A DNA stretch of 64,000 bases from Mobula birostris (taxonomy: Eukaryota), in NCBI RefSeq assembly GCF_030028105.1, contig NC_092374.1:90362491-90426490 (forward strand), read 5' to 3'. The position numbers were made by a program, and so were the translations under genes. This document shows, piece by piece, positions 17,030-56,843 of the stretch. The notes beneath the pieces were generated by a model, which had not been told where the DNA came from, searched no databases, and saw only the letters and a program-made list of their open reading frames with translations. How positions within the stretch are numbered: position 1 is the stretch's first letter; the number at the start of each line of letters is the position of its first letter.

Positions 17030-17590
17030 CAACGGCTAGTTGTCGCAAGTGCTTAATCAGCCAATCATGTGGTAAAAACTCAATGCATAAAAACATGTGG
17101 ACGTGATCAAGAGGTTCCGTTGTTGTTCAGGCCAAACACATGAATAGAGAAGAAATGTGAGCTAAGCTCCTTTGATCGTGGAATGATTGTTGGTGCCAGA
17201 TAGGGTGGTTTGAGTATCTCAGAAACTGCTGATCTCCTGGGATTTTCACATACAACAGCCTCCTAAGTTTACAGAGAATGGTGCGGAAAACAAACAAACG
17301 AAACATAATATCCAGTGAGCAGCAGTTCTGTGGATAAAAGTGCCTTGTTAATGTGAGACATCAAAGGAGAATGGGCAGAAAGATTCCAGATGACAAGAAG
17401 GCTACGGTAACGCAAATAACCACGGGTTACAACAGTGGTCTGCAGAAGAGCGTCTCTGAACGCACAGGACGTCGAACCCTGGGCTACAGTGGTAGAAACT
17501 GTTTCAGATACTGTTTCCTTTAACTGTATACACTTGAACTTGAACTAGAAGACCAGACTGGGTTCCACTCCTGTACCTAATAAAGTCGCC
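17030..17590 (+). mobile_element. Tc1/mariner-derived non-autonomous element; family copies at 21300-23070, 28455-29000, 30345-30820, 45385-45955
   Basis: Transposase N-terminal remnant (DRGMIVGAR..GLSISETADLLGFSHTT); TIR-like CACTCAGTGGCCACTTTATTAGGTAC in family copies. Confidence 0.8.
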
Positions 17591-17823
17591 AATCAGGATA
17601 GAGCAGAACAGCGCAGGCACAGGCCATTTAGCATACTATGTGGTTCTGAACTAATAAAACTATTGAAGGCAGACTTAAGTAACCTGGCTACACAAGTATA
17701 TCTCTCCATTCTCTTTACATCCATCAGAGGGGGCGGTTATTTAACACTGGTGTGGAAGTTGGGGCTTCTCTGGAATTCTTGATCCTTGAGCCGAGATCAC
17801 TTCAGATGGGAAGGAGATGGACC

Positions 17824-17840
17824 TTACAGTACTGAGGCTC
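17824..17840 (-). CDS. PILR-like receptor, terminal cytoplasmic exon (G)ASVL*
   Basis: Acceptor CTTCCCTTCCCTGCCGGTTGCCAG|GA GCC TCA GTA CTG TAA; phase 1 matches the donor of the TM exon ~315 nt upstream. Confidence 0.6.
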
Positions 17841-18156
17841 CTGGCAACCGGCAGGGAAGGGAAGATGAGTGCTGGGGTACATCAGCCAAACTGACTTTAA
17901 TAATGGGGCAGATATGCTGGGCCAAGTGGCCTCGTCCTGCTCCTACTTTTTGATGGAGGTGTAGTGAGGGGAAGGGAATGATAGGCTCGGTATGCCAAGA
18001 ATCACAGAGGTGTGAACATCGGGTTAAGGAGCCACCATTCAGAGACTCACATGGTGCTGGATACTGCGGCCCTCAACAGTATGCCAAGTCTAACGGGAGG
18101 CCGATGTGAGTCATTCGGTCCGGCAGTGACCTGCGTCGTCAGAAAACGCAAGTTAC

Positions 18157-18312
18157 CTGCAACTGGGCTCCTCTTGATCAGGTAAGTGCCCACGGTCCAC
18201 ACCACTGCCTGCAGTCCGAAAACCAGCGCCGACCGGATCATCAGGATGGAGCCGTGGCTCAGCTTCCGCATCCTCGGAGTTACTGCGGTCACTCTGGGGG
18301 TCAACGAGCCTC
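18157..18312 (-). CDS. PILR-like receptor, stalk + transmembrane exon (GSLTPRVTAVTPRMRKLSHGSILMIRSALVFGLQAVVWTVGTYLIKRSPVA)
   Basis: Acceptor TTCCATCTCACAG|GA, donor GCAG|GTAACT, 156 nt, phase 1-1; hydrophobic helix with an Arg near its N-terminus followed by KR. Confidence 0.8.
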
Positions 18313-19465
18313 CTGTGAGATGGAATTCAGCGCAGTGACTTCGGGACAGGAGAAGAGGGCAGAGAAACCAACACCATGTGAGGAGCTGGGGTAGTGGAAG
18401 ATACATCAGGGGCCTTTTACAAAACTAGAAGTTAGGGACCTCGTCGATGGAAAATGGAGGACTACGTAGGAGGGATGGGTGTAAACTGATTTTAGAGTAA
18501 GATAAAAGGTTGGCACAACATCATGAGCCGAGGAGCCTGTATTGTGCTGCAGTGTTCCCTGCAGAACAAGGCAAAGATCAATGGAGTTGTTGACAGTGTG
18601 GAGGGCAATCATTTCTATGCTCAATCCCAATGTGTTGGTAAAATGAGGCTGGGAAATCACCTAAGAAGTTTAATCCGGATAAGTGTGAGCTGAAAGACAC
18701 TGGGTGCATTAATAAGGCCAGGACCATGCAGTGCTGAGGAAGAGTGGGACAGGGGTGTTTTCACTGGAGAGGGTGCAGAGAACCTTCACGGGATGTTATC
18801 TGGGACAATGTGCTTCAGTGATGGGTCTTCATTCCCTGGAATGGAAGTGGTTTGAAAGGAACAAGATTGAGGTGCACATATCCATGAGAGTACAGACAGA
18901 GTAGATAAAAGGAAATATTTCTCATTTCACATTCACAATATTTAACAACTTCATATATAAAATGTCAAGGTGAGGAGTAAGGGATTTGGAGGGTGTCTGA
19001 GAGGGAACTTTCTCACCCAGAGAGCGGTAAGTACCTGGAACTCACGGCCAGAGAGTGGGGCGGAAGCAGAGTGACAGATATATTTTAGGAAGGGTCTAGA
19101 CGAGTACATGAACTATCCATGGATAGGAGGTGAGGGGGCCAAGTGCCGGGAGATGAGATTAGTGCGGACAGGAGAAAATCTTCAGATACTGGAAATACAA
19201 GGAGCACACGCTAAATGCTCAAGGAACTCAGCAGACCAGGCAGCATCTCTGGGGGAAAAAAGTACCGTCCATGTTTCGGGCCGAAAGCCTTCGGTAGGAC
19301 GGATGTGAGTTAATTAATACGGATGTAAGTCAGCCGAGATAGGCCAAGTGGACTGTTGCCCTGCAGAGTGAAAATGTGAAGACATGAAGCTGGATTGAAG
19401 CATGGGAATTAATTGAAAGAACCTGCAGACAAGAGCAGAGGTCAGGGTAAGGATTCAGGACCCAT

Positions 19466-19837
19466 TTCTCACTGACAGAAACGTCCCTGAGATGCTTTGC
19501 CATTCTATCAGCTGATGATGATTTTCCAAAATTGTCACACGGCAGAAATAGAAATTGGAGTCATTTCCTTTCAGCCGATGTAAGCGGATAGAGCCCGTCT
19601 TGTCTCGAAGACGGTTGCCCAGCAACTCGATCCGGCCTCGGTATTCACCAATTGTCTTGTTTAGCAAAAACGTGAATATATCTGTCCTGAAATGATCAAC
19701 TTTCCATGAGATATGAATGTCTCCGGGTGTGTAGATATCTGGGTAAGTGAGGGAGCAGAGAAGAGTAGTAGTCCCCTTCTCTATAGCCTCTATGTATGCC
19801 GGATTCTCCAACCAGAACCCACGTCCATCAGTCTGCG
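19466..19837 (-). CDS. IgV exon V1, PILR/Siglec-like; splice donor mutated (AT), reads through to a stop at 19455-19457
   Basis: Acceptor CTCTCTCTCAG|CG; TLLCSLTYP, ISWKVDHF, YRGRIE, GSIRLHRL, D-x-x-x-YFCRV, WQSISGTFLSV; expected donor position reads A|ATGGGT. Confidence 0.8.
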
Positions 19838-21381
19838 CTGAGAGAGAGGAAGTGAGCAAACTGTCATTTTGGCAACCTCCAACGACATTGCACCAGGCAG
19901 CCAATCAACCCATAATACTCTTAGCATCAGACAAGCCCCTGCCCTCAGACTGTGGACAGAAAACCAGCCCATAACTTAACGCAACGCTATTACAGCTCGG
20001 GGCATCAGAGTTCGGGTTCAGTTCCGGTGTCCACTCTAGGAAAATGTGTACGTCCTTCCTGTCTGCACGTGTGTTTTCTCTGGGTGCTCCGGTTTCCTCC
20101 CACAGTGCAAGGTCGTACCGGTTAGCGGGTTAATTGGTCATTGTAAGTTGTCCTGTGTTTAGGTTAGGGTTAAATCAGTGGATTCCTGGGTGGTGCGGCT
20201 CGTATAGCCGGGAGGGCCTGTTCCGTGCTGTATCGCTAAATAAATATAAATAAATAAATATATTCTCTCATCATCAGACAATCCTCCGTTGTTTGGCTGA
20301 TGTATCAAATTTCCCTTCCCCAGTACCAGGTTCCAACTCCGAATGACCTGCAGCTTCCACGTTCACAGACTGTGGACATTAGAATCAGAATCAATTTTAA
20401 TATCACTGGCATATGTCGTAAAATTTGTTTTATGTGGCGGCAGTACATCATAGTACATAATAAAACCTGCCAAGTATCAGTGTGGAGTCCTCTTGAACTG
20501 GCACCCTGTCCCTGGATAAATGGACGCTGTAGCTGGCAAGGGTTAAGGTGATGTGCTGACAGAGGAAAGCTTGTTTACTGTTACCTGCCATTGAACAGTT
20601 ACTTTAATTAATTCTCAAATATTATTAGTCTTTAACACGTTGATTGAATTGGATTTAACAGCTGGTCTATATGGTGATTGGTACTTGTACACTCAATGCC
20701 TCTTTATCAAGTACAACCGTATACCTGCTCATTAATGAAAATATCTAATCAGCCATTTCTTAACCTTGGTTTCCTAAGGTTGTCATAGCCAGGGGTAGTA
20801 ATGGAGGTAACCTCCCACCACCTATTATATGCTCCCAATGGCATGCGCCGCAAATAGACTCTGAGAACCAAGTCCAACTCCTGGCCTTCACCGGTGGCTT
20901 AGCTACTAAGCCTGGTGGAACTGTTTCTACTGACAGGAGAAAGGGCGAAGGGGGTGGGGTCACTAGCACCTTAAAACCAGTCACTTTGGGCAGATGAGGC
21001 TTGTTAGCCGTGGTTGGCAGCTCATCTAGGAGAAGGAAAACTGATCTCCAACCTCCACTGCCTTGCGGCTATACCCACTCATGGGGAAGGCTTCAGGAGT
21101 AAACTCCAAGGAAAATCCAGAGCTGGAATCCCTAAAATTGACAGACAACTCCTACGACGCCACTGGTGCCAAATGGTATCGGTCTTGGTTTTTCCTTGGG
21201 ATTCATCAGATGAGTGGAGAGCGGGAGCCTGCTACATGAGCTGCTGCCTTGGCTTGCGTATCACATAGGCAGCTAGGACACAATATCCTTGGTCAATCTA
21301 GCCAACAAAAGGCTGCAATCAGCCAATCATATGACACTAACTCAATGCATAAAAGCATGCAGACGTGGTCAAGAGGTTCAG

Positions 21382-22563
21382 TGTCATGGTCCGGTCAGTG
21401 AAGACCGTATTCCAGTTCACAGTCTGGTCCATCGATCCGTATTCCAGGTTTTCTGGTTTTCCCTTGTCCTGTTGTGTGCCTTAATTGAGGCGCATGATTC
21501 TGATTTTGGGCTGGCTACATAAATAGCTCCTGGGTTCAGCTTCATTTGCTGGACTGTTCCCTTCCCTTCACCTTCCTCTTGAAGCCTTCCCTGCAACCTC
21601 ACCTGCGTCCTTGCCTGTATTGCTGTCAGGTTCTACTGCCAGAGCAAGACCGGAGCCTTGCTGCATCTAGATAAGGAACTGTCCATTGTTGTTTTGAACT
21701 TTCTCTGTGTCCGTGCCTTCGCTAGGTAGGTCTGGCCATTTGCTGCTACCCAGTGTTGAGAACCATCTCGTCGTGTTCAGCATTCTGTGTAGAGCCCCGG
21801 CCCCATGTCCTGTCCCTAAGGAGGGGTCCAGGCTCTGTGTTCCATGTCCCTGTGTTCCTGTCTCTCAAGTCCAAGGCTCTGTGTTCTGCATTCCTGTCTC
21901 CCAAGGCCAGGGCTCTGTGTTCTGCATTCCTGTCTCCCAAGACCAAGGCTCTGTGTTCTGCATTCCTGTCTCCCAAGACCAAGTCAAGGCTTTGGGGTCT
22001 CATCCTGTCTTTGTGCTTCACCCAGCCTAGCAGTACCCCGTCCAATCCAAGCCATGTCCAAGAAACTCGTCCAGTCCAAGAACCTCGTTCTGTCCAAGCC
22101 ACGTCCAAGAACCTCGTTCTGTCCAAGTCAAGGCTTTGTGTTCTCGTCCATGTACCTCATCCTGTGCAGGAGTTCCACATCCTGTTCTGTAGCTACGTCC
22201 TGTCTTTGCCAAGATCCTAGGCCCAAGTCCTAGCCTAGACCCGGGTTCCGGTTCCGAGTCAGGACCCAGGTTGCTAGTCCCAACCAAGACCTAGGTTGCG
22301 GGTCCTTGTCCAGGCTCTAGTTCCAGAGTTCTGTGTTCCTAGTCCAGGCACCTTGTTCCTAGTTCCTTGTCTGGGTTCTGTGTTTCTTGTCCATGTTCTA
22401 GACCAAGCCCTGCATCCTGGTCTCATCCAGAGTCTGTGTCAATGTCCAGCATCCTTTCTTCCCCACTTCCCTTGCTTGCTTAACTCTAGTCCTAGTCCTG
22501 TTCCTTGTACTTCAGTGTCTGTGTCTTGCATTTGGGTCCACTCCCAATGCCCCGCTTATGACA
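21382..22563. mobile_element. Solo LTR (1.18 kb, internal tandem repeats) inserted into a Tc1-derived element
   Basis: TGTCAT...ATGACA termini; 5-bp TSD TTCAG (21377-21381, 22564-22568); Tc1 sequence continues across it; ~27-bp tandem repeats at 21830-21990. Confidence 0.85.
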
Positions 22564-23208
22564 TTCAGTTGATGTTCAGACCAAACATCAGAATGGTGAT
22601 GAAATGTGATATAAGTGACTTTGACTGTGGAATGATTGTTGGTGCCAGGTGGATCTGTTTGAGTAACTCAGAAATGACTGAGCTGGAACTTTCACACACA
22701 ACAGTGTCTATAGAGTTTACAGAGAATTGTACGAAAGTATCTTAGAAACTGCTGATCACCTGGGCTTTTCACAGTTTACAGAGTTTACAGAGAATGGTGT
22801 AAAAAAATGCGAAAACAAAATGCAGTGTGTGACAGTTATGTGTGTAAAATTGCCTTATTGATGAGAGAGGTCTGGGGATGGTCAAACAGGTTCAAGCTGA
22901 CAGGAAGGCGACAGTAACTCAAGTAATCATGCGCTATAGCAGTGGTGAGCAGAATTGCCTTTTGGAGAGCACAACACGTCAAACCCTGAAGTGGATGGAC
23001 TGCAGCAGCAGAAGACCATGAACATACACTCAGTGGCCACTTTATTAGGTACAGGAGGTACCTAAGAGACCACTGAATGTATATTCAAATGATGGAATTA
23101 GAAATTGCACAAGGATCAGGACAAAGATGAAGTTGCATACAGATTACTGGACAAAATTTGACAATTCTAAGCTTTGGAACAAGTCAGTGACAGGGCTGAC
23201 CCATTCTC

Positions 23209-23269
23209 CTTGTGCATGAGTGTGACTGCAAGTTGTCAGAATCCAGGTAATCAGCGAGAACAGATGTAT
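23209..23269 (-). pseudogene. Degenerate leader exon of the V1 cassette (ATA for ATG, GA for GT donor)
   Basis: (I)HLFSLITWILTTCSHTHAQ G|GAGAAT; adjacent 23280-23400 is homologous to the promoter-side sequence at 28280-28400 and 30160-30290. Confidence 0.45.
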
Positions 23270-24339
23270 TCCCCTTCCCTCGGAGACACAGACTCTGCCC
23301 CACACCCAGTCTATTTCTGTGTTGTTGCTTCTGCTGTTCTCATCTCCCTGTCTCCTCATCCGTACCTGGTTTCGACACCCTCCCATCATTTCTCCACCCC
23401 TGCCCAAGGTCCCACCTACTGCCTACTTCCTACTGGAAACCGCACCAACAGTCCAGGAGGGGACCATCGGTGCTGGAATCTGGAGCAGCAGACAAACTGC
23501 TGGAGAAACTTAATGGGTCGAGCAGCATCTGTGGAGGGAAATGGTTGGTCATAGTTTTGAGTCAAAGTACAATGTTCCTCCCTTTGTTCCCATTTTCCCT
23601 CCCTACTCCCCTCACTTGGTTCCAAGATCCACCTTCTTCTCAACAAAAGTTCAAAGTTCATAGTAAATTTATTATCAAACTACATTTATGTCACCATGAA
23701 CCCTGAGATTCATTTTCTTGGGGGCATACTCAATAGATCCATAATAGAATAATAACCATAACAGAATCAATGGAAGATGCACCAATTTGGGTGTTTAACT
23801 AGTGTGCACAGACAACAAACTGTATACAAAGGCAAAGAAATTATATTAATAAGTAAGCAGTAAATATTGAGAACATGAGATGATGTGTCCTTAAAAGTGA
23901 GTCCATAAGTTGTGGGAACATTTCAATGATGTTCTCTCCACTACATATCCATAGAGGTTTGTCAAAGTTTCAGATGTCAAGCTGAACCTGCAGCCCATTG
24001 TCACCTCCAACTACCTCCTGTCAGCTTCTCTTTCTGTTCCCACTACCCCGCTCCTCCATCTTCCTGTCACCGCTCCTGCCCTGATCCACCGATCGCTTAC
24101 CAGCTCCTGCTCTATACCTTCCCCACCCCACCCCATTCTTTATCCTGGCCCTCTACCCTCTGTTTTTCAGTCTGGATAAAGAGTCTCATCTCAAAACAGT
24201 GACCGTCTATTCCTCTTTACAGATGCAGCCTGACCGATTGACTTAGAATACAGACCATACAACATTGCAGCATGACACAGGCCCTTTGGCCCACGATGAC
24301 ATGCTGACCTTTCAACCTACTGTTGCAGATAAGGGCAGA

Positions 24340-25260
24340 GAAATGTCACATCAGGTTTAACCCAAATAAATGTGAGGTGGTGCACCTTGGTGGGGCAAAT
24401 GCAAGGAGACAGTACACTGTTAAGGGCAAGATCCTTAACAGTGTTGCTGAGCAGAGGGATCTTGGGATAGCTCCTTGAAAGTGGCTACACAGGTCAATAG
24501 GATGGTTAGGAAGGCTTATGGAATGCTTGCTTTTATTATTCAAGACACCGAGTCCAAAAGTCAAGAGGTTATATTGCAACTTTATAAAAAATTCTGGCTA
24601 GGCCACATCTGCGTTATTGCATATAGTTCTGATCACCCCACTATAGGAAGGATGTTGAGTCTTTGGAGAGGGTCTAGAAGAGGTGTGTTGTGCTGTAATG
24701 CTGCCTGGTTTAGAGGGTATGTGCTATCATGAGATTCAAACAGGAGGACATGAGTTGAGAGTTAAAGGGCAAAAGTTTAGGGGTAACATGAGAGGGAACT
24801 TCTTTACTCAGAGGGTGGTAGCTGTGTGGAACGAGCTTCCAGCAGAAGTGGTTGAGGCAGGTTCGATGTTGTCGTTTAAAGTTAAATTGGATAGATATAC
24901 GGACAGGAAAGGAATGGAGGGTTATGGGCTGAGTGCAGGTCGGTGGGACTAGGTGAGAGTAAGCATTCGGCATGGACTAGAAGGGCTGAGATGTCCTGTT
25001 TCCATGCTGTAATTGTTATATGGTTATATGAGAGGCTGGATAAACTTGGGTTGTTTCCTCTGGTGGCGAAGGCTGCCGGAGGGCATGCATTGAATGTGAG
25101 AAGGGGGTAAGTTCAGAGGAGGGGGTGTGAGGGGTAAGTTTTTTACTCAGAGAGTGGTGGATGCCTGGAATGCACAGCCTGTTATGGTGGTAGAGGCAAA
25201 TATATTAGAGGCTTTTAAGAGACATTTGGATAAGCACATGGATGTGAGGAAGATATGGAC
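24340..25260 (+). mobile_element. CR1 LINE 3' fragments (nested)
   Basis: KVATQVNRMVRKAYGMLAFI; GHELRVKGQKFRGNMRGNFFTQRVVAVWNELP; RGKFFTQRVVDAWNA. Confidence 0.8.
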
Positions 25261-25790
25261 ATTGTGTAAGTCGGACAGATTAGAGTTTGGGTGTTTTTCA
25301 ATTCCTTTTTAGTTGGTTTGACACAATGTTGTAGTCTGAATGCCCTGTTCATGTGCTATACTGTTCTATCTTACTCTAAGATCAATCTAACTCTTCCCTC
25401 CTATATAGCCCTGCATTTTTTTCTATCATCCATGTGCCTATCTAAGAGTCTCTTGAATGTCTGTAGCGTATCAGCCTCTGCCACCACCCCTGGCTGGGTG
25501 TTCCACGCAGCCACCACTCGCTGGGTCTGCCTCTGACATCCCCCTCCCCCCCATAAATTCCTCCATTCACTTTAAAATTGATACCTCCTCGTATCAGCCG
25601 TTTCCACCCTAGGGGAAAGTCTCTGGCTGTCCATTTGATATGTGCATCTTATACACCTCTACCAAGTTACTCTCATCCTCTTTTGCTCCAAAGAGTAAAG
25701 CCCTCTTCTAGTGTTTTGTATGTTGCTACAGGTAAACATGCACCCTCACTGACTACAGTAAAAACCACCACCCATATGAAAGTCATATGG

Positions 25791-25830
<40 letters not shown>
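25791..25830. repeat. (GA)n microsatellite
   Basis: About 20 GA units seen directly. Confidence 0.95.
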
Positions 25831-25831
<1 letters not shown>

Positions 25832-27287
25832 GTGACCTCGTTACTTCTGGTCAGGTTACCACAGACCATGGGGTGGGACAGACTAGCCCAGAGGTCCAAT
25901 AATTACACAGGGTCCCAGAGATACTGAACGTCTTTCTGAAGCCATGTCCTCTTAAAGGCAGCACTGCCCACAGAGCAGGACACTGCCCCAATCAGAATAA
26001 TGACTGTAAACAGCTCTAGAAGGTGGCATCCATGATTAAGTACACTCATGATCCAGGACATTCTCTCTTCTCGTTGCTACCATCAGGGACGAGGTACAGC
26101 AGTCTGAAGACCCATACTCAATGATTTAGAACATAGAAATCTACAGCACATTACAGGCCCTTCGGCCCACAACGTTGTGCCAGCCATGTAACCTACTCTA
26201 GAAAACTGCCTAGAATTTCCCCACCACATAGCCCACTATTTTCCTAAGCTTCATGTACCTATCTAAGAGTGTCTTAAAAGACTCTATTGTATCCACCTCT
26301 ACCGCTGTCACTGACACTCACCTCTCCGTGTGTGAAAAACTTATCTCAGACAGTCCCTCTGTGCTTACTTCCAAGCACCTACAAAATATGTCCCCTTGTG
26401 TTAGCCATTACAACCATAGGAAAAAGCCTCTGGCTATCCACACAGTTGATGCCTCTCATCATCTTAGAATCAGCTTCTTTCCCTCTGCCATCAGATTTCT
26501 GAATGGTCTGCAGTCCCATGAACCTTGTTATTTGTCCTCTGTTATTTTTAGTAATTATATCACTTTATTTTTAGTAATTGTCTCACTTTTTCTGCTTGGT
26601 AGGTTTTTTGTTATCACAATTTTTCAATCTTTAAGATAATGTCTTTTTACAGACGTTGTAAGTGTTGTTACTTCAATGTACTCATGTTATTTCTTTTGTA
26701 TAATATAACAATAAAAAGATTTGAAAAGAAAGTAATTATATCTTTACACTGTAGCGCTGTCACAAAACAACATGATTTTGTTTCTGGCAAATAAAAAAAA
26801 GAGCAAAATATTGCAAAGGTCTCGGACTCTGATTCAGGGCCACAGCACTCCCCAATGATGCCTAGAGATGAGAGCTCTCTGAAACTTTAAAGAAAATATT
26901 GCAGACATTTTACATTTTTAATTAGAGATACAGCATGGTAGCAGACCCTTTCAGCCCAACGCCAGCATGATCAATCAATCTACAAACCTGTAGGTCTTTG
27001 GACTGTGGGAGGAAACCGGAACACCTGGAGGAAACGCACATGAGCACAGGGAGAACCTACAACCTCCTGACAGGCAGCAGCGGGAATTGAACCTGAGTCG
27101 CTGGCACTGCAATAGCATTACGCTAACCATGCTGCCGCGTTGAAACATTCGGAAATGAAAACTATGAACTGGTCGAAATATTCAGCTGGTCAGACAGCCT
27201 CTGGGGAGGTGTTTGTACGACGGTTGTTTTCAGGCTCATCACAATTATTATCCAACCAAGAACAGAAACTTTGAAGCACCAGCTCAC

Positions 27288-27656
27288 CGTTCACTTTCAG
27301 GATGGTCCCAGAGGCGCTCTGCCTCATCTTATTTTCTTCCCCAAACATGGTCACACCACAGAAATAGGTGTTAGAGTCCACTTGGTTCAGCTGATGTAAG
27401 CAGATGGAACCAGTCTTGTCTCGCAGTGGGGAGCCCAGGAACTCAATCTGGCCTCGGTATTCGTGGGTGGTGTAGTTCAGTAAGGAACTGAATATATATG
27501 TGCCGTTGTAGTTACCAACTCTCCATCTGATGTCGATGCGTCTGGGTGTGGAGGTGTCCGGGTACGTGAAGGAGCAGGGGAGAGTGACAGACTCACCCTC
27601 TTTACCTTCCACGTTGCTTGCCTGCTGCACCCGAAACCCACTTCCACTGGACCGTG
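27288..27656 (-). CDS. IgV exon V2, PILR/Siglec-like, open frame with intact splice sites
   Basis: Acceptor CCCTTTCCCTCAG|CA, donor AAC G|GTGAGC, 369 nt, phase 1-1; VTLPCSFTYP, IRWRVG, YRGQIE, YFCGV, SGTILKV. Confidence 0.85.
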
Positions 27657-28195
27657 CTGAGGGAAAGGGAGGGAGCAAACAGTCATTTGGGAACCTCTGA
27701 CTGCATCTCATCCTGCAGGCAACAAGTCCATAATACTCTCAGCACCTAACAAGCCCCTGCCCTGGCTGGTAGACTAAACTCCACTCTAAGACAAGAGGGG
27801 AGGGAGGAACATGTAACCATAAGACACCATAAGACCTAGGAGAGAGGCTATATGTTCCATCAAGTCTGCTCTGCCATTCAATCCCAGATAATTTATTATC
27901 CCTCTCAAGGCCATTCTTCAGCCTTCTCCTCTTAACAGTTGACACCTCTACTAATCAATAACCTTTGAACCTCCGCATTAAATATGCCCAATAACATGGC
28001 CTGCACAGCCGTCTGTGGCCATGAATTCCACAGACTTACCATGCTCTGGCTGAAGAAATCCTTCCTCACTTCTGTAAAGGGTGTATTGTGAGGCTGTGCC
28101 CTCTGGTCCCAGACTCCCCCACTACTGGAAACACCCCTCCCTTCTTGTCAATCTCCTGAGCTGGGTCTAGAGCAACTCGAGCTGGGTCCACAACA

Positions 28196-28238
28196 TCCAC
28201 GTGAGTTTCAGCAGCGTCAGCCACAGGCTGGAGTTCAC
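28196..28238 (-). pseudogene. Degenerate leader exon of the V2 cassette (GTG start, donor lost)
   Basis: GTG AAC TCC AGC CTG TGG CTG ACG CTG CTG AAA CTC ACG TGG A|TGTTGT aligns without gaps to the intact 43-nt leader at 30087-30129. Confidence 0.65.
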
Positions 28239-29165
28239 GAACCCTCTCGGCCGACACTCCTCCCTGGGTATAAACCCTTTGCCTCGGTGACACAGACCCT
28301 GCCTCACTCCCCGTCTGTATCCGAGTTATTGCTTCTGCTTGCCACATTTCTGTGTCCACATCAGTTTCTAGTTTCAGCACCCTCTAATCATTTCCCAGCA
28401 CCTCCACTCAGTCCAGCCTTCTGCTCATTTACTCTCAAACTGTGCTACATGGAAACTCAGTGGCCATTTTACTAGGTGCATCTGTACGGTCCTCATAAGT
28501 GCAAATACCCAATCAGCCAATCATGCGTCAGCAACACAGTGTGTAAAACACAGGCATGGTCAAAAGGTTAAGTTGTTGCACAGACCAAATATCAGAATGG
28601 GAACGAAATTTGATCTCAGTGACTTTGACCGTGGAATAATTGTTGTTGCCGGACACAGTGGATTCAGAATCTCAGAAACTATTGATCTCCTGGGATCTTC
28701 ACACACAACAATTGCTAAAGTTTACAGAGAATGGTGTGAAAAAAAACAAAAAAAATCCAGTGATTGACGGTTCTGTGGGCGAAAATGCTTTATTATTGAA
28801 AAATTTCAGAGGATGTTGGCCAGACGAGTTCAAGCAGACAGGAAGCAACAGTAACTCAAGTAGCCATGTGTTATAGTGTTGGTGTGCAGAAGAGCATCTC
28901 TGATCACACTAAACATCAAACCTCAAAGTGGATGGGCTACAGCAGCAGAAGGCCATGAACATACGCACTGTGGCCACTGTATTAGATACAGGAGGTGGCC
29001 ACTGAATGTATGCAGGTGTTGAAACATTTGGAAATGAAAACATTCACCTGGTCAATGAGCCTCTCAGGAGGGCTGTGCATGTGTGTGTTTTGGGGGAAGG
29101 TGTTTTCAGATTGATTGGAATCATTATCCAGCTAAGAAGAAGAAAACTTTGAAGCACCAGCTCAC

Positions 29166-29534
29166 TGTTCACTTTCAGGACGGTCCCTGAGGCACCCTGC
29201 CACATCTTATTTTCTTCCCCAAACATGGTCACGCCACAAAAATAGGTGTTGGAGTCCACTTGGTTCAGCCGGTGTAAGCGGATGGAACCGGTCTTGTCTT
29301 GCAGTGGGGAGCCCAGGAACTCAATCCGGCCTCGGTATTCGTGGGTGGTGTGGTTCAGTAAGGAACTGAATATATATGTGTCGTTGTAGTTACCGACTCT
29401 CCATCTGATGTCGATGCGTCTGGGTGTGGAGGTGTCCGGGTACGTGAAGGAGCAGGGGAGAGTGACGGACTCACCTTCTTTACCTTCCGCATTGCTTGCC
29501 TGCTGCACCCGAAACCCACTTCCACTGGACCGTG
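29166..29534 (-). CDS. IgV exon V3, PILR/Siglec-like, intact
   Basis: Acceptor CCCTTTCCCTAAG|CA, donor AAC A|GTGAGC, 369 nt, phase 1-1; about 23 nt differences from V2 by manual alignment. Confidence 0.87.
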
Positions 29535-30086
29535 CTTAGGGAAAGGGAGGGAGCAAACAGTCATTTTGGAACCTCTGACCACATCTCAGCTGGCAGACAA
29601 GTAGCCTGTAACACTCGGCACCAGACAAGCCCCTGCCCCCCTAGCTGATGGACTAACCTTCACCCTAAGACAAGAGGGGTGGGGAGGAAGAGGTGACCAT
29701 TACACCATAAGACCTAGGAGCACATTTAGGCCATTTGTTCCATCGAGTCTGCTCCACCATTCAATCCCAGCTGATTTATTATCCCCCTCAAAGCCACTCT
29801 TCTGCCTTCTTCCCTTAACTATTAACACCCTTATTAGTCATTAACCATTGAACTCTGCTTTAAGTACACCCAGAGACGTGGCCTCCACAGTCGTCTGTGG
29901 CAATGAATTCCACAGATTTACCACACTCTGGCTGAACAAATTCCTCCTCATCCCTGTTCTAAAGGGACTTACTTCTATTCTGAGGATATTCCCTCTGGTC
30001 CCAGACTCACCCACTATTGAAAACATCCCTCCCCTCTTGTCAAACTCTTGAGTGAAGGGGTGACGACTGGAGCTGGGTCTACTCAC

Positions 30087-30129
30087 CCAGCATGAGTTGA
30101 AGTAGCATCAGGTACAGTGTGGAACCCAT
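30087..30129 (-). CDS. Signal-peptide exon of the PILR-like gene (MGSTLYLMLLQLML-A)
   Basis: CC ATG G start context, hydrophobic 14-mer, canonical donor CTG G|GTGAGT in phase 1, matching the V exon acceptors. Confidence 0.82.
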
Positions 30130-31572
30130 GGACCTTTCTCACCCTGGGTGTAGACCCCTTGACTCGGTCACACAGACTCTGTCTCTCTCCCCATCTGTTT
30201 TTGTGTTTTTGCTTCTGCTTTCCACATTTCTCTGTCTCCATATCCGTTCCAGGTTTTGACACCCTCCAATCATTTCCCAACCCTTCCCCTGGGTCCAACG
30301 TCCTGTTCAGATTCTCTCAGGGTTACAGACAGCGCTACAGGTACACTCGGTGGCCACTTTATTAAGTACGCCTGTACACCCCTCGTTAATGCAAATATCT
30401 AACCAGCCAATCATCTGTCAGCAACTGAATGCATAAAAGCATGCAGACACAGTCAAGAGGTTCAGTTGTTCTTCAGACCAAACAGCAGAATGGGAATAAA
30501 TTGGATCTCAGGGAATTTGATCATGGAATGATTGTTGGTGCCAGATAGAGTGGTTTGAGTATCTCAGATTCTATTGATCTCCTGGGATTTTCACGCACAG
30601 CTGTCTGAGAATTGTGCAAAAAATGGAAAACATCCAGTGACAGCCAGTTCTGTGGGAGAAAACACCTTGTTAATGAGATAGGTCAGATGAGAATGGCCAT
30701 ACTGATCCAAGTCAACAGGAACTCAAATAACCATGTGCTACATCAGTGGTGTACAGAAGAGCATTTATGAATGCACAACATGGTGAATCTAGGAGTGGAT
30801 GAGCAGAAGACAATGAATATACACTCTTAACAAACAAAAGAAATCTGCTTACACTGGAAATCCAAGCAACACACACAAATTGCTGGAGGAACTGAACAGG
30901 GCAGGTAGCATCTGTGGAAAACTGTAAAGTCAACTGTAAGGGTTTCTTCTTTTATGTTACTGCTAAGGTGAATAAAATGACTTCTCTACTGTTAACTGCT
31001 GAGGCAGTGGTTCTCTATAGCAGCATGTTTGGGTTATAATTAGTGATAATGGGATTTGTATTCATTTGTTAACCAATTGGGATAGATGTTATTCTTTCTG
31101 TCTGTGTGAAAGCTGTTAGTTTGCGCAGGCTTGGGGGAGAAGGCGCGAGGAGGATGAAGAGAGAAGACGTGGCTTGAAGAGACAGTTGCCGGACCTGCTG
31201 GGCCTGGGCTCGTGGCGGGAGCCCAGGGGTCGACGACGAGTGGAGGAGGATCAGCGAAAGGGAATCCGTGAGCTCCAATGTTTGTGCACTGGACATGCTT
31301 ATAAGATTATCGGCATCTTTTATTTGTTTTCCTTTTCTTTTGTTTCTCTACTAACCCCATACTTAAAATCTTAATTAATATAAATTAATCTAAATTAATA
31401 TAAAATCTTAATCATTTAACCGCACATTGTGGACTGAATGTTATTTCAGGGTACTGATGTTACACAGGGAACACAACACGTAGCATCCACCCAAACAGGA
31501 GTGCTAAAGTTTGGCCGGGGAGTGGGCGTCACCCTCGAGATCATGCCACTAGGCAAAGCAAGTCTTACAATG

Positions 31573-34190: not shown

Positions 34191-35251
34191 TACCAATCGA
34201 GGAAAAGGGGAAGAATACAGATTTGACAGATGATGAGATGGAGGTGTGGTACATGCTGCCTTTCGCTAACTTCCCCTTGCTGGATGAAGAGACTCCTGGC
34301 CCTTCTCCCACTGAGTCAGGTGAGGTGGGGGTGGCTAGCTGTGGGCAGCCTGGGTTACTGCAGGACCCTGAAGGAGAGACTGGGGGGGAGAGGGGGAGCA
34401 TGAGTGAGAGATTGAGAGAGGATTCAGCAAGCAGACCCGAGGTATCCCCAGTAGAGTCTGACCCTGAAGGGTTTGGGTGAGGGGGTACAGAGGTCTCGGA
34501 GGACTAGGAAACTCCCAGATAGGTTGGCCTATGTAGTGCCTGGGGAACAGGGCATGAGGTCTACTGTTTGGGGAGCAATGTCACTGTTTGTACCTGGACT
34601 GAGGTTTGTGTCTGCAGGAAGGGTTGGCGAGTTATTTAGAAGTCATGAGGACATGACTAAATTTGGGGGGGGGAAGAGTGTAAGGGTTTCTTCTTTTATG
34701 TTACTGCTAGGGTGAACTCTGTACTGTTAACTGCTGAGGCAGTGGTTCTCTACAGCAGCATGTTTAGGTTATAATTAGTGATAACGGGACATGTATTCAT
34801 TTGCTAACCAATAGGGATAGATGTTATTCTTTCTGTCTGTGTGAAAGCTGTTAGTTTGTGTGAGATTTGGTGGAGAAGGCGCAAGGAGGATGAGGAGAGA
34901 AGACGTAGCTTGAAGAGATGGTTGCTGGACCTGCTGGGCCTGGGCTCAGGGCAGGAACCTAGGGACCGACTAGCAAAGGAGGATCAGCGAAAGGGAATCC
35001 ATGAGCTCCAACGTTTGTGCACTGGACATGTTTATGAGATTATTGGTGCCTCTTATTTGTTTTCCTTTTCTTTTGTTTCTCTACTAACCCCATACTTAAA
35101 TATAAAATCTTAATCGTTTAACCGCACGTTGTGGACTGAATGTTATTTCGGGGTACTGATGTTTCACAGGGGACACAACACGCAGCATCCATCCAAACAA
35201 GAGTGCTAAAATTTGGCCGGGTGAGGGTGCCACCACCAAGATCATGCCACA

Positions 35252-44760: not shown

Positions 44761-46699
44761 CCAGTGTCTGGGTTGGCTGCTGGTCAAATATCAGAGTTCG
44801 GAGTTCAATTCTGACATCATCTGTAAGGAGTCTATAAGTCCTCCCTGTGAAATGTGAGGGTTTCCACCGGGTGCTCTGATTTCCTCTTACAGTTCAAAGT
44901 CATACTGGTTAGTAAGGCACCGTAAGTTGTTGCGTGATTAGGCTAGAGTTAAATCGGGGGATCGCTGGGCGGCGCAGCTCCAAGGACTGGAAGGGGTTAT
45001 TCCGTGCTGTATCTCAATAGATAAAAGCCTTTTACTGTAGCTCAAGTTCAGCCAGAATCACAGCCGTGTATATTGTGTCATTAGTTGTTTTGTGGCAGCA
45101 GTACAGTGCACGTGCACGTGACCATAAAAAAAACACTTGCCAATGCAATTGCTCTGTTTGCTGTAATGGCTAGGATCTTCCTGTGGCCACCTATTTCAAT
45201 TCCACCTCCTATTCCCACACTGACCTGCTTCTCATATCATCCGTCCTCCCTCACCCAGCCTAATACCCTCCCATTCACCTGGTCTTGCCTATGACTTGCA
45301 GTTTGTACTCCTTCCCCTCCCCCATCCTTTTATTCTGGGTTCTGCCCCCTTCCTTTCCAATCCTGATAATGGGTCTTGGGTCAAAAGATTGACTATACAC
45401 ACAGTGGCTACATAATTAAGGTACCTCTTGTACCTTAAAAAATGGCCACTGAGTGTATGTCTGTGGTGTTTTGCAGCTGTAGGTTCAAAGTTTAATGTGT
45501 TGTGTGTTCGGAGATGCTCTTCTGCACACCACTGTTGTAACACATGGTTATTTGAGTTACTGTTGCATTCCTGTCAGCTTCAATCAGTCCGGCTATTCTC
45601 CCCTGACTTTTCCAAATAACAAGGTGCTTTACCAACAGAAATGCCACTTTGCTGCTTTTTTTTTGTTTTTTGCACCATTCTCTGTAAACGCTAGAGACAG
45701 TTGTGCATGAAAATCTCAAGAGATCAGCAGTTTCAGAGATACTCAAATCACCCCATCTGGCATCAACAATCATTCCACGGTCAAAGTCCCTTAGATCACA
45801 TTTCTTCCCCATTGTGGTATTTGATCCAAACAACAACTGAACCTCTTGACCACGTCAGCATGATTTTATGCATTGTTGCTGAGATAGGCCAGTTAGATAC
45901 TTGCATTTGCAAGCAGGTGTACAGGTGTACCCAATAAAGTGGCCACTCAGTGTTCATTTACCTCCATGGATGCTGCCTGGCCTACTGAGTTCCTCCAGCA
46001 ATTTGTGTATTTGTTGCCAATAGCAAGTCCCTAGTAGCAGGGTTCAATTCCTGACATGGCCTGTAAGAAGTTTGTACATTCTCTCTGTGACCACATGGGT
46101 TTCCTCTGGGTGCTCCAGTTTCCTCCCACAGTCCAAAGATGTACTAGTTCACAAACACAAGAAAATTTGCAGATGCTGGAAATCCAAGCAAAGCACACAA
46201 AATTCTGGAAAATCTCAGCAGGGCAGGTATCATCTGTGGAAAAGAGTAAACAGTCAACATTTTGGGCTGAGACCCTTTGTTAGGACTGGAAAAGAAAAAG
46301 TTGGTCTTGGCCTAAAACGTTGACTGTTTACTCTTTTCCATAGATGATGCCTGCCCTGCTGAGTTCCGCCTGCATTTTGTGGGTGCCGGTTAGTGGGTTA
46401 ATTGGCCATTATTAAAGTGTCCTGGGATTAGGTTAGGGTGAGGATTAAATCAGCAGATTGCTGGGCAGTTTTGCTGGAAGGGCTGAAAAGGCCTACTCCG
46501 CATTGTAAATAAACATTGGATTATCCGGTTAATTGTACTTGCTCCTTGGGTGTGAGGGATTCAAGTCCTCCCGTGACTGCCACCAGAAATCAGAATGTAG
46601 TGGAAGCCAAAGCTATTAGGATTTGTGAAAGAATAAAGAATATATCCAAGACAGATTGGAAAAGGTGCATAAGACACAGCTTTATTCTACCGGTGAAAG

Positions 46700-56495: not shown

Positions 56496-56843
56496 CAGTG
56501 ACGGTCAGTTTGATGGTGGCACAGGTGTCGAAGGATTGTGGCCGGTCGGTGTTCACCCTGCATTCATAGATTCCAGTGTCATTCACAGTGAGCCCGGTCA
56601 GATTCAGCGAGGGCTCTTTCTTCTCGAACCAGTTGGCAGCCACGGAGGTGCGGTCCGCATACATGCGGTCCTGGTGTTTCTGCTGCTGAGGGTCTGTGTT
56701 GTGCACCACCATGGAGTCCTTCTGCCAGACCGCACGCTGCACCTCAGGCACCACCCCTGTCCAGTTGAACTGGCAGGGCAGTAGGACCCAGGAGCCACTC
56801 ACCGCGTCAATGTCTTCCTTATGCTTGTTGCATTGGATCCTCG
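56496..56843 (-). CDS. B7/butyrophilin-like IgV exon
   Basis: Acceptor TGTCCCGTTCCAG|CG, donor ACT G|GTGGGT, 348 nt, phase 1-1; VLLPCQF, AVWQKD..VVH, Q..YADRT, SLNLTGL..NDTGIYECRV, IKLTV. Confidence 0.87.

Follow-up and report, generated by a model that had tools for sequence, protein, structure and literature searches.

Duplication of an outer V exon and loss of the inner V splice donor at a PILR-like receptor locus of the manta Mobula birostris

Three V-set exons, one live leader and one transmembrane (TM) exon lie on the minus strand of this M. birostris locus, and the question is whether such an arrangement represents a set of alternative cassettes or a receptor gene of a familiar kind. 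The preliminary description favored the former. It proposed three tandem promoter-leader-V units that, singly or in sets, would be spliced to one shared TM/tail module, by the logic of clustered protocadherins and UGT1A. Our analysis of the window (the whole 64-kb stretch of DNA) indicates that the locus most likely arose by exon duplication of an ordinary kind within a receptor cluster that is already known, with a duplicated outer V exon and an inner V exon without a splice donor. It does not reveal a new mechanism of receptor diversification. With moderate confidence, we read the locus as one manta gene for an activating two-V PILR-like receptor, used mainly in the form L3-V3-V2-TM.

Exon anatomy and the plan of the ray family

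The features of the locus are collected in Table 1. As had been claimed, V3, V2 and V1 are all open minus-strand V-set exons, with matches to Pfam V-set at E values of 6e-12, 2e-11 and 2e-7, respectively. The TM exon is the Arg-bearing one, and the five exons, which together hold about 1.3 kb of coding sequence, contain zero stops and zero frameshifts. The predicted products of 194 aa (L-V3-TM) and 317 aa (L-V3-V2-TM) are confirmed by reading-frame arithmetic, as no junction creates a stop. However, any chain of these exons gives an open frame because the exons are all phase 1, and annotators should be aware that chains of phase-1 exons always read open.

Table 1. Positions of the features of the locus within the window
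Feature	Position	Strand	Description
Proposed last-exon coding start	17824..17840	-	G-A-S-V-L-stop; good acceptor, frame fits; candidate
Stalk/TM exon	18157..18312	-	Arg in membrane span (…LSHGSILMIRSALV…); phase 1-1; strong acceptor and donor
Former V1 donor	19464..19465	-	AT in place of GT (AGAA/ATGGGT)
V1, Vb-type (membrane-proximal) V-set exon	19466..19837	-	123-codon frame intact; strong acceptor
P1, promoter-like relic	23265..23405	-	3.4 kb upstream of V1
Downstream copy of 1.88-kb tandem duplication	27225..28707	-	partner 29101-30599; 81% overall identity
V2, Va-type V-set exon	27288..27656	-	strong acceptor CAG; donor ACG/GTGAGC
L2, dead leader relic	28196..28238	-	57-63% identical to L3
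V3, Va-type (membrane-distal) V-set exon	29166..29534	-	acceptor AAG (weak); donor ACA/GTGAGC
Leader exon L3	30087..30129	-	ATG, 14 codons plus 1 base; donor TGG/GTGAGT (phase 1)
P3, promoter-like/5′UTR piece	30149..30288	-	just upstream of live leader; function inferred from position only

The gene is a member of a PILR-like cluster on this M. birostris chromosome. Among ray gene models, the norm is a leader followed by Va (outer V), Vb (inner V) and TM exons, and the full plan with an Arg in the TM exon and a short tail is seen in M. hypostoma XP_062903656.1, Hypanus XP_059829860.1 and Hemitrygon XP_072903791.1. These two-V PILR-like receptors exist as pipeline gene models only, namely M. 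hypostoma LOC134346254 (XP_062903656.1) and LOC134346255, Hypanus LOC132396364, Hemitrygon XP_072903791.1 and XP_072906125.1, and M. birostris XP_072114488-95. Their pipeline names are inconsistent and include "PILR alpha/beta," "turtle homolog B-like" and "pIgR-like." A literature search on PILR in sharks and rays returned nothing relevant, and the family seems to be undescribed in the literature searched.

The order of the manta locus (leader, Va, Vb and TM on one strand) is that of the ray two-V genes, with an extra Va copy and a dead Vb donor. In the tree, V3 and V2 cluster with both Va-type domains of Hemitrygon XP_072906125.1 (99/98), next to the ray receptors' first domains, and V1 with the second domains of these receptors (94/92). 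The proposal that V1 repeats the promoter-leader-V unit a third time is thus not upheld; V1 belongs to the other domain type and corresponds to the usual second domain of the family, its donor now missing. The ancestral plan would have been leader, Va, Vb, Arg-bearing TM exon and short tail.

The duplicated outer V exon and its leaders

V3 and V2, both of the membrane-distal type, arose recently by tandem copying. They share 94% of their nucleotides and 92% of their amino acids (10 of 122 residues differ), and both carry YFCGV at strand F, with Gly at the position of the Siglec-type Arg. Identity differs by part, from 94% in the exon to 81% in the intron, 76% upstream and 63% in the leader (Fisher p 7e-9). 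The dN/dS ratio between the two exons is 0.26, with a synonymous excess at p 0.003, and the lineage-specific amino acid changes number approximately 5 in V2 and 4 in V3, compared to about 31 expected per neutral branch. Judged from these substitution patterns, V2 is clearly under purifying selection, which suggests that the L3 transcript probably includes it as an internal exon. V2 nevertheless departs from nearly all relatives at two otherwise conserved sites (RGRIEF to RGQIEF and WQ to RQ) and carries an extra Cys. Gene conversion as the source of the exon identity was judged unlikely, as identity falls steeply where the exon starts and ends, and it is the non-synonymous sites that show the excess of conservation.

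The leaders have fared differently from the V exons. L3, previously described as intact, has its ATG and its GTGAGT donor, and a scan for an ATG, a hydrophobic stretch and a donor found no other hydrophobic leader upstream of the V exons that begins with ATG and ends in a phase-1 donor; the scan gave, besides L3, only a few unrelated chance ORFs. L2 is a true homologue and, as described, a relic, in which ATG has become GTG and the donor GTGAGT has become ATGTTG. The leader relic assigned to V1, 3.4 kb away from it, could not be substantiated. It is 39% identical to L3 over the leader, cannot be aligned and has no ATG-leader-donor arrangement, and homology nearby is confined to a 148-nt upstream piece (76%). 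Promoter-like pieces do occur three times, since P3 is homologous to 28275-28397 (79%) and to P1 (76%). P1 is not a high-copy repeat (zero read depth in its bin) and is followed by no recognisable leader or Va exon. Among the leaders at the locus, L3 is the only one from which a protein can start.

These observations point to the following course of events. A 1.9-kb piece with promoter, leader and Va exon would have been duplicated in tandem, after which the downstream copy would have lost its start codon and leader donor and retained a V exon under selection. Because L2 can neither start nor splice and V2 is selected, V2 would be an internal exon of a transcript started at L3.

The same observations bear on the cassette design. 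Three homologous promoter-like pieces, a single TM/tail module and in-frame junctions are what such a design would have. However, two of the three leaders can neither start a protein nor splice, so that the design already fails on leader integrity. Moreover, the V exons carry acceptors and are internal, not first exons; V1 is the other domain type, the normal second domain of the family, and lacks a donor; and the relatives use their V domains in series (Va-Vb and even Va-Vb-Vb′), which also speaks against a choice of one V at a time. We therefore consider a protocadherin- or UGT1A-like arrangement extremely improbable. What stands of the proposal is the single live leader with its putative promoter, the single TM/tail module and the in-frame junctions. 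More broadly, the exons, the single TM exon and the frame arithmetic of the preliminary description were upheld, but not V1 as an equivalent unit, its leader relic or the uniform 1-1 phase.

The inner V exon, the membrane module and the possible products

V1 carries YFCRV at strand F, in which the Siglec-type Arg is kept and aligns to FCR of PILR alpha. The domain that keeps this Arg is the one without a splice donor. Read-through past the lost donor ends in SVRNGS-stop, and a cryptic donor (TCA/GTGAGA) is in phase 0 and, when joined to the TM exon, gives EAR-stop. The 3′ end of V1 is not a splice site, and it is here that the claim of phase 1-1 for all exons fails. The Vb exon has kept a clean frame and lost its donor, and the former inner domain seems to be disappearing. 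The intact frame and core residues of V1 fit poorly with a simply skipped exon and count against the preferred reading.

The TM exon matches a profile built from relatives only at an E value of 1e-24 (82 bits). It is 77.5% identical to the TM exon of Hemitrygon XP_072903791.1, which is joined directly to Vb in that model, and the core motif is identical. The claim of a single TM exon, with no TM homologue between V1 and V3, was borne out, as the relatives' profile gave no second family-type TM exon in the 64 kb (next best profile E value, 0.32). That next match (28496-28567) covers 14 residues only, includes an Asp and was rejected as a TM exon. A TM-like ORF at 25906-26076 on the minus strand, at a suggestive distance below V2, aligns with the TM exon without gaps at 31% (tblastn E 0.5); its profile E value of 27 indicates a chance match, and it is closely preceded by stops and lacks phase-1 splice sites. 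Neither TM nor tail exons of the inhibitory type were found at the locus.

The proposed tail exon follows a good acceptor and continues the frame, and the tail of the M. hypostoma paralogue is similarly short (G-D-P-stop). It is a candidate only, with no canonical poly(A) signal (AATAAA/ATTAAA) within 2.3 kb downstream, and its proposed status, together with a predicted V2-to-TM intron of 9 kb, counts against the preferred reading. A longer tail like that of Hemitrygon or Hypanus was considered, but the "KETVSET" match at 17500-17520 falls in a dispersed repeat and is due to chance. The Arg in the TM span and the 13-residue tail are both present in the sequence and conserved in relatives.

With the V1 donor lost, only the route through L3 and V2 is open, and the sole path to a membrane receptor would be L3-(V3)-V2-TM-tail, most probably as L3-V3-V2-TM. 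A second outer-type domain would occupy the former place of Vb in this predicted product, and no domain would carry the Siglec-type Arg. The charged TM residue and short tail suggest signaling via an ITAM adaptor such as DAP12. From this anatomy we infer the exon joining actually used, expression, the adaptor and the ligand.

Several other outcomes can be considered. First, a single L3 promoter could yield L-V3-TM, L-V2-TM and L-V3-V2-TM, as well as soluble forms ending in V1 or after V2, in meaningful amounts by ordinary exon skipping. The V and TM exons are phase 1-1, so any combination would be in frame, and the weak AAG acceptor of V3 compared to the CAG of V2 favors some skipping of V3. 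V2 and V3 are both under selection. Among the relatives' gene models, Hypanus X3 (262 aa) skips Vb, whereas M. hypostoma X2, Hypanus X2 and M. birostris X4 are soluble isoforms that skip the TM exon. However, a swap between two exons this similar would add little diversity, and the duplicated Vb exons of the M. hypostoma three-V gene (Va-Vb-Vb′) are both kept in four of four modelled isoforms. Furthermore, V1-terminated forms would require intronic polyadenylation, for which the sole signal is an ATTAAA 790 nt on. Skipping on this scale is in our judgment rather unlikely. Less likely still is that one promoter serves Arg-less outer-type membrane forms (V3-V2-TM, V3-TM and V2-TM) together with a soluble three-V form ending in the Arg-bearing V1, in which case the loss of the V1 donor would be a switch that turns the sialic acid–type domain into a secreted decoy and not a defect.

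Second, L3-V3-V2 might be a secreted two-V gene that ends soon after V2, and P1, lost exons, V1 and the TM exon the wreck of a neighboring activating receptor. P1 lies between V2 and V1, an ATTAAA and an AATAAA occur 366 and 719 nt past V2, and the model of the closest relative (Hemitrygon XP_072906125.1) has two Va-type exons in 2.45 kb and no TM exon. This model, however, is incomplete, as it starts within an intron and runs on past its last donor. V2 has a strong donor (score 8.5) whose phase matches that of the TM acceptor. In addition, the TM exon looks fully functional and would have no other in-frame partner in the window, given the dead V1 donor and the lack of a further leader. We regard two separate units as very unlikely.

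Third, the gene could be recently disabled or silent, that is, a young pseudogene or an unexpressed gene whose open frames have yet to decay. The AAG acceptor of V3 and the AT at the V1 donor are two weakened splice signals that could mark early decay, L2 and L1 are dead, and the tail exon is followed by no canonical poly(A) signal. Three homology searches able to catch products of 67-546 aa found no protein from the locus in the protein collection, though M. birostris is annotated; annotators may see no gene there, or a pseudogene. Searches of sequencing runs listed no RNA run that contains the stretch. Three small M. birostris runs aligned to 17700-23600 gave depth on repeats only and zero on the tail, TM and V1 exons, which is no evidence of silence. 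Against inactivation stand the frames free of stops and frameshifts, the strong splice sites at L3, V2 and the TM exon, the perfectly conserved TM motif, and the clear constraint on V2 and V3 since their duplication. Given this constraint and the intact frames, any inactivation must be very recent, and we hold it to be a rather unlikely alternative to the activating two-V receptor that we prefer.

Collectively, the locus illustrates how Ig-receptor genes in a cartilaginous fish gain and swap domains: a promoter-leader-V unit is copied, the leader of the copy dies, and the V exon survives internally. It is a useful instance of how clusters of paired receptors turn over their domains. As the ray two-V family seems to be undescribed in the literature searched, a brief comparative study of the entire cluster may be worthwhile.

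Comparison with PILR and other known systems

Compared to the ray two-V receptors, the manta locus has the same V-domain family, Va/Vb order, Arg-bearing TM exon and short tail, and it shares the phase 1 of all internal exons except at the dead Vb (V1) donor. M. birostris XP_072114488-95 belong to the same chromosome cluster in the manta. Intragenic V-exon duplication is also found in the M. hypostoma Va-Vb-Vb′ gene, but at the manta locus it is Va that was copied, together with promoter and leader. The locus further differs from the ray receptors in the lost Vb donor, in having no protein model found, and in its predicted membrane product (Va-Va′-TM), which would be without an Arg-bearing domain.

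Compared to mammalian PILRs, the paired logic is similar, with a charged TM residue and short tail at the manta locus and ITIM partners nearby. Activating PILR members combine a positively charged TM residue and a short tail with binding to DAP12. The TM residue is Lys in PILR beta and Arg here. PILR alpha/beta were the best full-domain phmmer matches to V1 (E 1e-10) and V3 (E 2e-9), and among solved structures these Siglec-like V-set proteins come closest both in sequence (E 1e-9 to 1e-10) and in fold. Foldseek with the predicted model of V1 (pLDDT 88) placed PILR alpha/beta at ranks 1-6 (TM 0.82-0.87), followed by sialoadhesin and Siglec-15. The strand-F Arg for sialic acid is conserved in PILRs and shared with Siglecs (PMC13358205); it is kept in V1 and replaced by Gly in V3 and V2. 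Mammalian PILRs have one Ig domain (PMC3533184). The manta locus, in contrast, has three V exons and the ray family two or three, and a single-V product would arise only via exon skipping.

Compared to clustered protocadherins and UGT1A, the locus likewise has tandem homologous units upstream of one shared C-terminal module. In those systems each variable exon comes first in its transcript, lacks an acceptor and has a live promoter of its own, and exactly one is used per transcript. The manta locus, unlike them, has one live leader, internal V exons that each start at an AG acceptor behind a pyrimidine tract, and two domain types that normally occur together. A precedent for a skipped V1 may be found in KIR2D pseudoexon 3 and in Ig-exon skipping of CD33 and CEACAM1, where an Ig exon with an open frame is left out through splice signals, as documented by cDNA, and where phase-1 Ig exons permit in-frame skipping. 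Skipping of V1 at the manta locus differs from these cases in that it is predicted solely from the missing donor.

Exon content and splicing potential

The locus is best read, from its sequence, as one activating two-V PILR-like gene in which the outer V exon was duplicated together with its promoter and leader, and the inner V exon (V1) has lost its donor. Every gene feature of the locus lies on the minus strand, and the V exons were translated from the preliminary coordinates shifted by two bases. When joined in silico, L3-V3-TM-tail and L3-V2-TM-tail (194 aa each), L3-V3-V2-TM-tail (317 aa) and L3-V3-V2-V1-TM-tail (441 aa) all gave open chains. The lengths previously proposed for L-V3-TM (194 aa) and L-V3-V2-TM (317 aa) were therefore correct. 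No AATAAA or ATTAAA was found within 2.3 kb downstream of the tail exon.

Features of the locus and other elements in the window
Feature	Positions	Strand	Description
L3 leader	30087-30129	minus	ATG, 14-residue hydrophobic leader plus one base, end TGG/GTGAGT
V3	29166-29534	minus	open V-set exon, Pfam V-set E 6e-12
V2	27288-27656	minus	open V-set exon, Pfam V-set E 2e-11
V1	19466-19837	minus	open V-set exon, Pfam V-set E 2e-7
Stalk/TM exon	18157-18312	minus	arginine within membrane span; acceptor and donor both good
Proposed tail exon	17824-17840	minus	G-A-S-V-L-stop, good acceptor; putative
Tandem repeat unit (1.88 kb)	27225-28707; 29101-30599		81% identity
Interspersed repeat	27856-28146; 29695-30032		leader-V introns of both units; further copies at about 4.7, 13.2, 59 and 63.4 kb
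Dispersed repeat	17054-17481; 22564-23088; 28511-28996; 30343-30780; 45389-45953		five copies, 72-82% alike; first four in same orientation, last reversed
Short tandem repeat	21855-21983		36-base period, copies ~94% alike, V2-V1 interval
Direct repeat	30935-31549; 34679-35250		two copies of ~600 bases, 88-89% identical, spaced by 3.7 kb, on the upstream side of the gene
Other V-set exon	56512-56811	minus	different Ig family (…LLPCQFNW…IYECRV); PILR-like queries match weakly

A profile built from five relatives' TM exons, with the window's own excluded, found a single match in the 64 kb translated in all six frames (82 bits, E 1e-24; next best E 0.32), as the preliminary description had claimed. 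No inhibitory-type TM or tail exon was found in the window.

The L3 donor is strong. V3 has an AAG acceptor, with an uncommon base at position -3, and a usable donor (ACA/GTGAGC), and V2 has a CAG acceptor and a strong donor (ACG/GTGAGC). V1 also has a CAG acceptor, with AGAA/ATGGGT at the place of the GTGAGC in V3 and V2. Reading through V1 leads to a stop after SVRNGS, and the sole GT near its end (TCA/GTGAGA) is in phase 0 and leads to EAR-stop in the TM exon. Judged by these signals, V1 is unable to feed the TM exon, which itself appears fully functional. Because the V1 donor is lost and the nearby GT is out of phase, V2 or V3 would be the only in-frame TM partners in the window. L3-V3-V2-TM is the probable main form at the membrane. 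However, simple skipping of V1, which is part of this reading, leaves the clean frame of V1 unexplained. There is real room for the locus being a very young pseudogene: two splice signals are weakened, and searches able to show 67-546 residues returned no protein from the locus, though those of neighbouring M. birostris genes did appear. A search of sequencing runs listed no RNA run that contains either half of the locus, and three small M. birostris runs gave depth over repeats only across 17700-23600.

Origin and retention of the V exons

Identity between the two duplicated units is 94% in the V exon, 81% in the leader-V intron, 76% in the upstream 300 bases, 69% in the stretch after the V exon and 63% in the leader, and falls abruptly at both V-exon borders (exon versus intron, Fisher p 7e-9). 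Between V2 and V3, dS is 0.14 and dN 0.036 (dN/dS 0.26), and 11 of 21 differences are synonymous versus ~5 expected (p 0.003). With relatives as outgroups, ~5 amino-acid changes fell on the V2 branch and 4 on that of V3, compared to ~31 expected on a neutral branch with its age set by intron divergence. The few changes, the low dN/dS and the exon-limited identity together indicate that V2 has been preserved as a coding exon. The leader belonging to V2 was not preserved: in the relic L2, the ATG is GTG and the donor GTGAGT is ATGTTG, so that V2 would be translatable only via splicing into an L3-started transcript. The interspersed repeat is common to both leader-V introns, and its insertion thus predates the duplication.

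A tree of 26 V domains pairs V3 with V2 (99/96) and nests them in a clade with both domains of Hemitrygon XP_072906125.1 (99/98), adjoining the first (outer, Va) domains of ray receptors. V1 groups with the second (inner, Vb) domains (94/92), to which it is 63-65% identical, versus 50% to V3. It had been taken for one more copy of the cassette that carries V3 and V2, a view that both tree and identity contradict. The leader relic assigned to V1 (L1) was not confirmed: over the leader it shares 39% identity with L3, and homology is limited to the preceding 148 bases (the promoter-like piece P1, 76%). L1 lies 3.4 kb upstream of V1, compared to a leader-V intron of 0.55 kb in the live unit. P1 had zero depth in the three small runs beside repeats at thousands, and is therefore not a common repeat; it may be what is left of a third promoter-leader-Va copy or of a formerly separate gene. 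One dispersed-repeat copy directly follows the dead L1 relic, and further copies border the V units; depth in the thousands over bins 22428-23215 in the three small runs marks this repeat as a high-copy element outside the gene's duplication.

Relatives and PILR likeness

Relatives were sought among 1.8 billion representative proteins and by word-based searches; the matches, all pipeline gene models, come from rays and sharks. The activating form is leader-Va-Vb-TM(Arg)-short tail (M. hypostoma XP_062903656.1, 306 aa; Hypanus XP_059829860.1; Hemitrygon XP_072903791.1), and the Hemitrygon model joins a V1-like domain directly to a TM exon 77.5% identical to that of the window. In the inhibitory form these two domains are followed by a TM and an ITIM tail (Pristis, Hemitrygon, Hypanus, M. 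birostris XP_072114488-95). Three V domains (Va-Vb-Vb') are present in one M. hypostoma gene, with both Vb copies kept in 4/4 modelled isoforms (443-509 aa), and Vb- or TM-skipping models occur in Hypanus (X3 and X2), M. hypostoma (X2) and M. birostris (X4). As these gene models indicate, V domains in series are the norm in this family, exon duplication is recurrent and in-frame skipping is ordinary. A 'pIgR-like' model of Heterodontus francisci (XP_067879820.1, 667 aa) reads leader-TM-V-TM-V-TM-V-TM-tail; since all exons share phase 1, the model has probably linked several tandem single-V activating genes together, a caution for gene models in this family. None of the literature searched dealt with PILR-like genes in cartilaginous fishes.

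The V domains are PILR-like by sequence and by fold. For the predicted structure of V1 (pLDDT 88), PILR alpha/beta took fold ranks 1-6 (TM-score 0.82-0.87), with sialoadhesin and Siglec-15 behind. Mammalian PILRs, however, are defined by one Ig domain, and the PILR naming here rests on sequence and fold; the gene is thus filed as a member of a ray two-V PILR-like group, not as a PILR proper. V1 carries the Siglec-type strand-F arginine (YFCRV, aligned with FCR of PILR alpha), which is found in the membrane-proximal domain of every ray two-V PILR-like protein compared and is absent from the distal domain. V3 and V2 have Gly at this position, so a V3-V2-TM product would be without it. By analogy with PILR beta (PMC3533184, PMC2211832), the charge in the TM span and the shortness of the tail suggest signalling via a DAP12-like adaptor.

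Comparison with variable-cassette loci

A protocadherin/UGT1A-like design, with variable V cassettes sharing one TM/tail module, had been proposed for this locus. The shared constant module is present, but two of three leaders are dead and the relatives use V domains in series, which argues against such a design. Transcripts from a single promoter may undergo ordinary cassette-exon skipping; this would add little diversity, as V2 and V3 differ at 10 residues only. Protocadherin and UGT1A loci work because every variable exon there is a first exon, driven by a separate promoter and lacking an acceptor, whereas the V exons in the window are internal; the defining features of that design are lacking at this locus. 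Furthermore, the three V exons represent two domain types that normally occur together in one protein.
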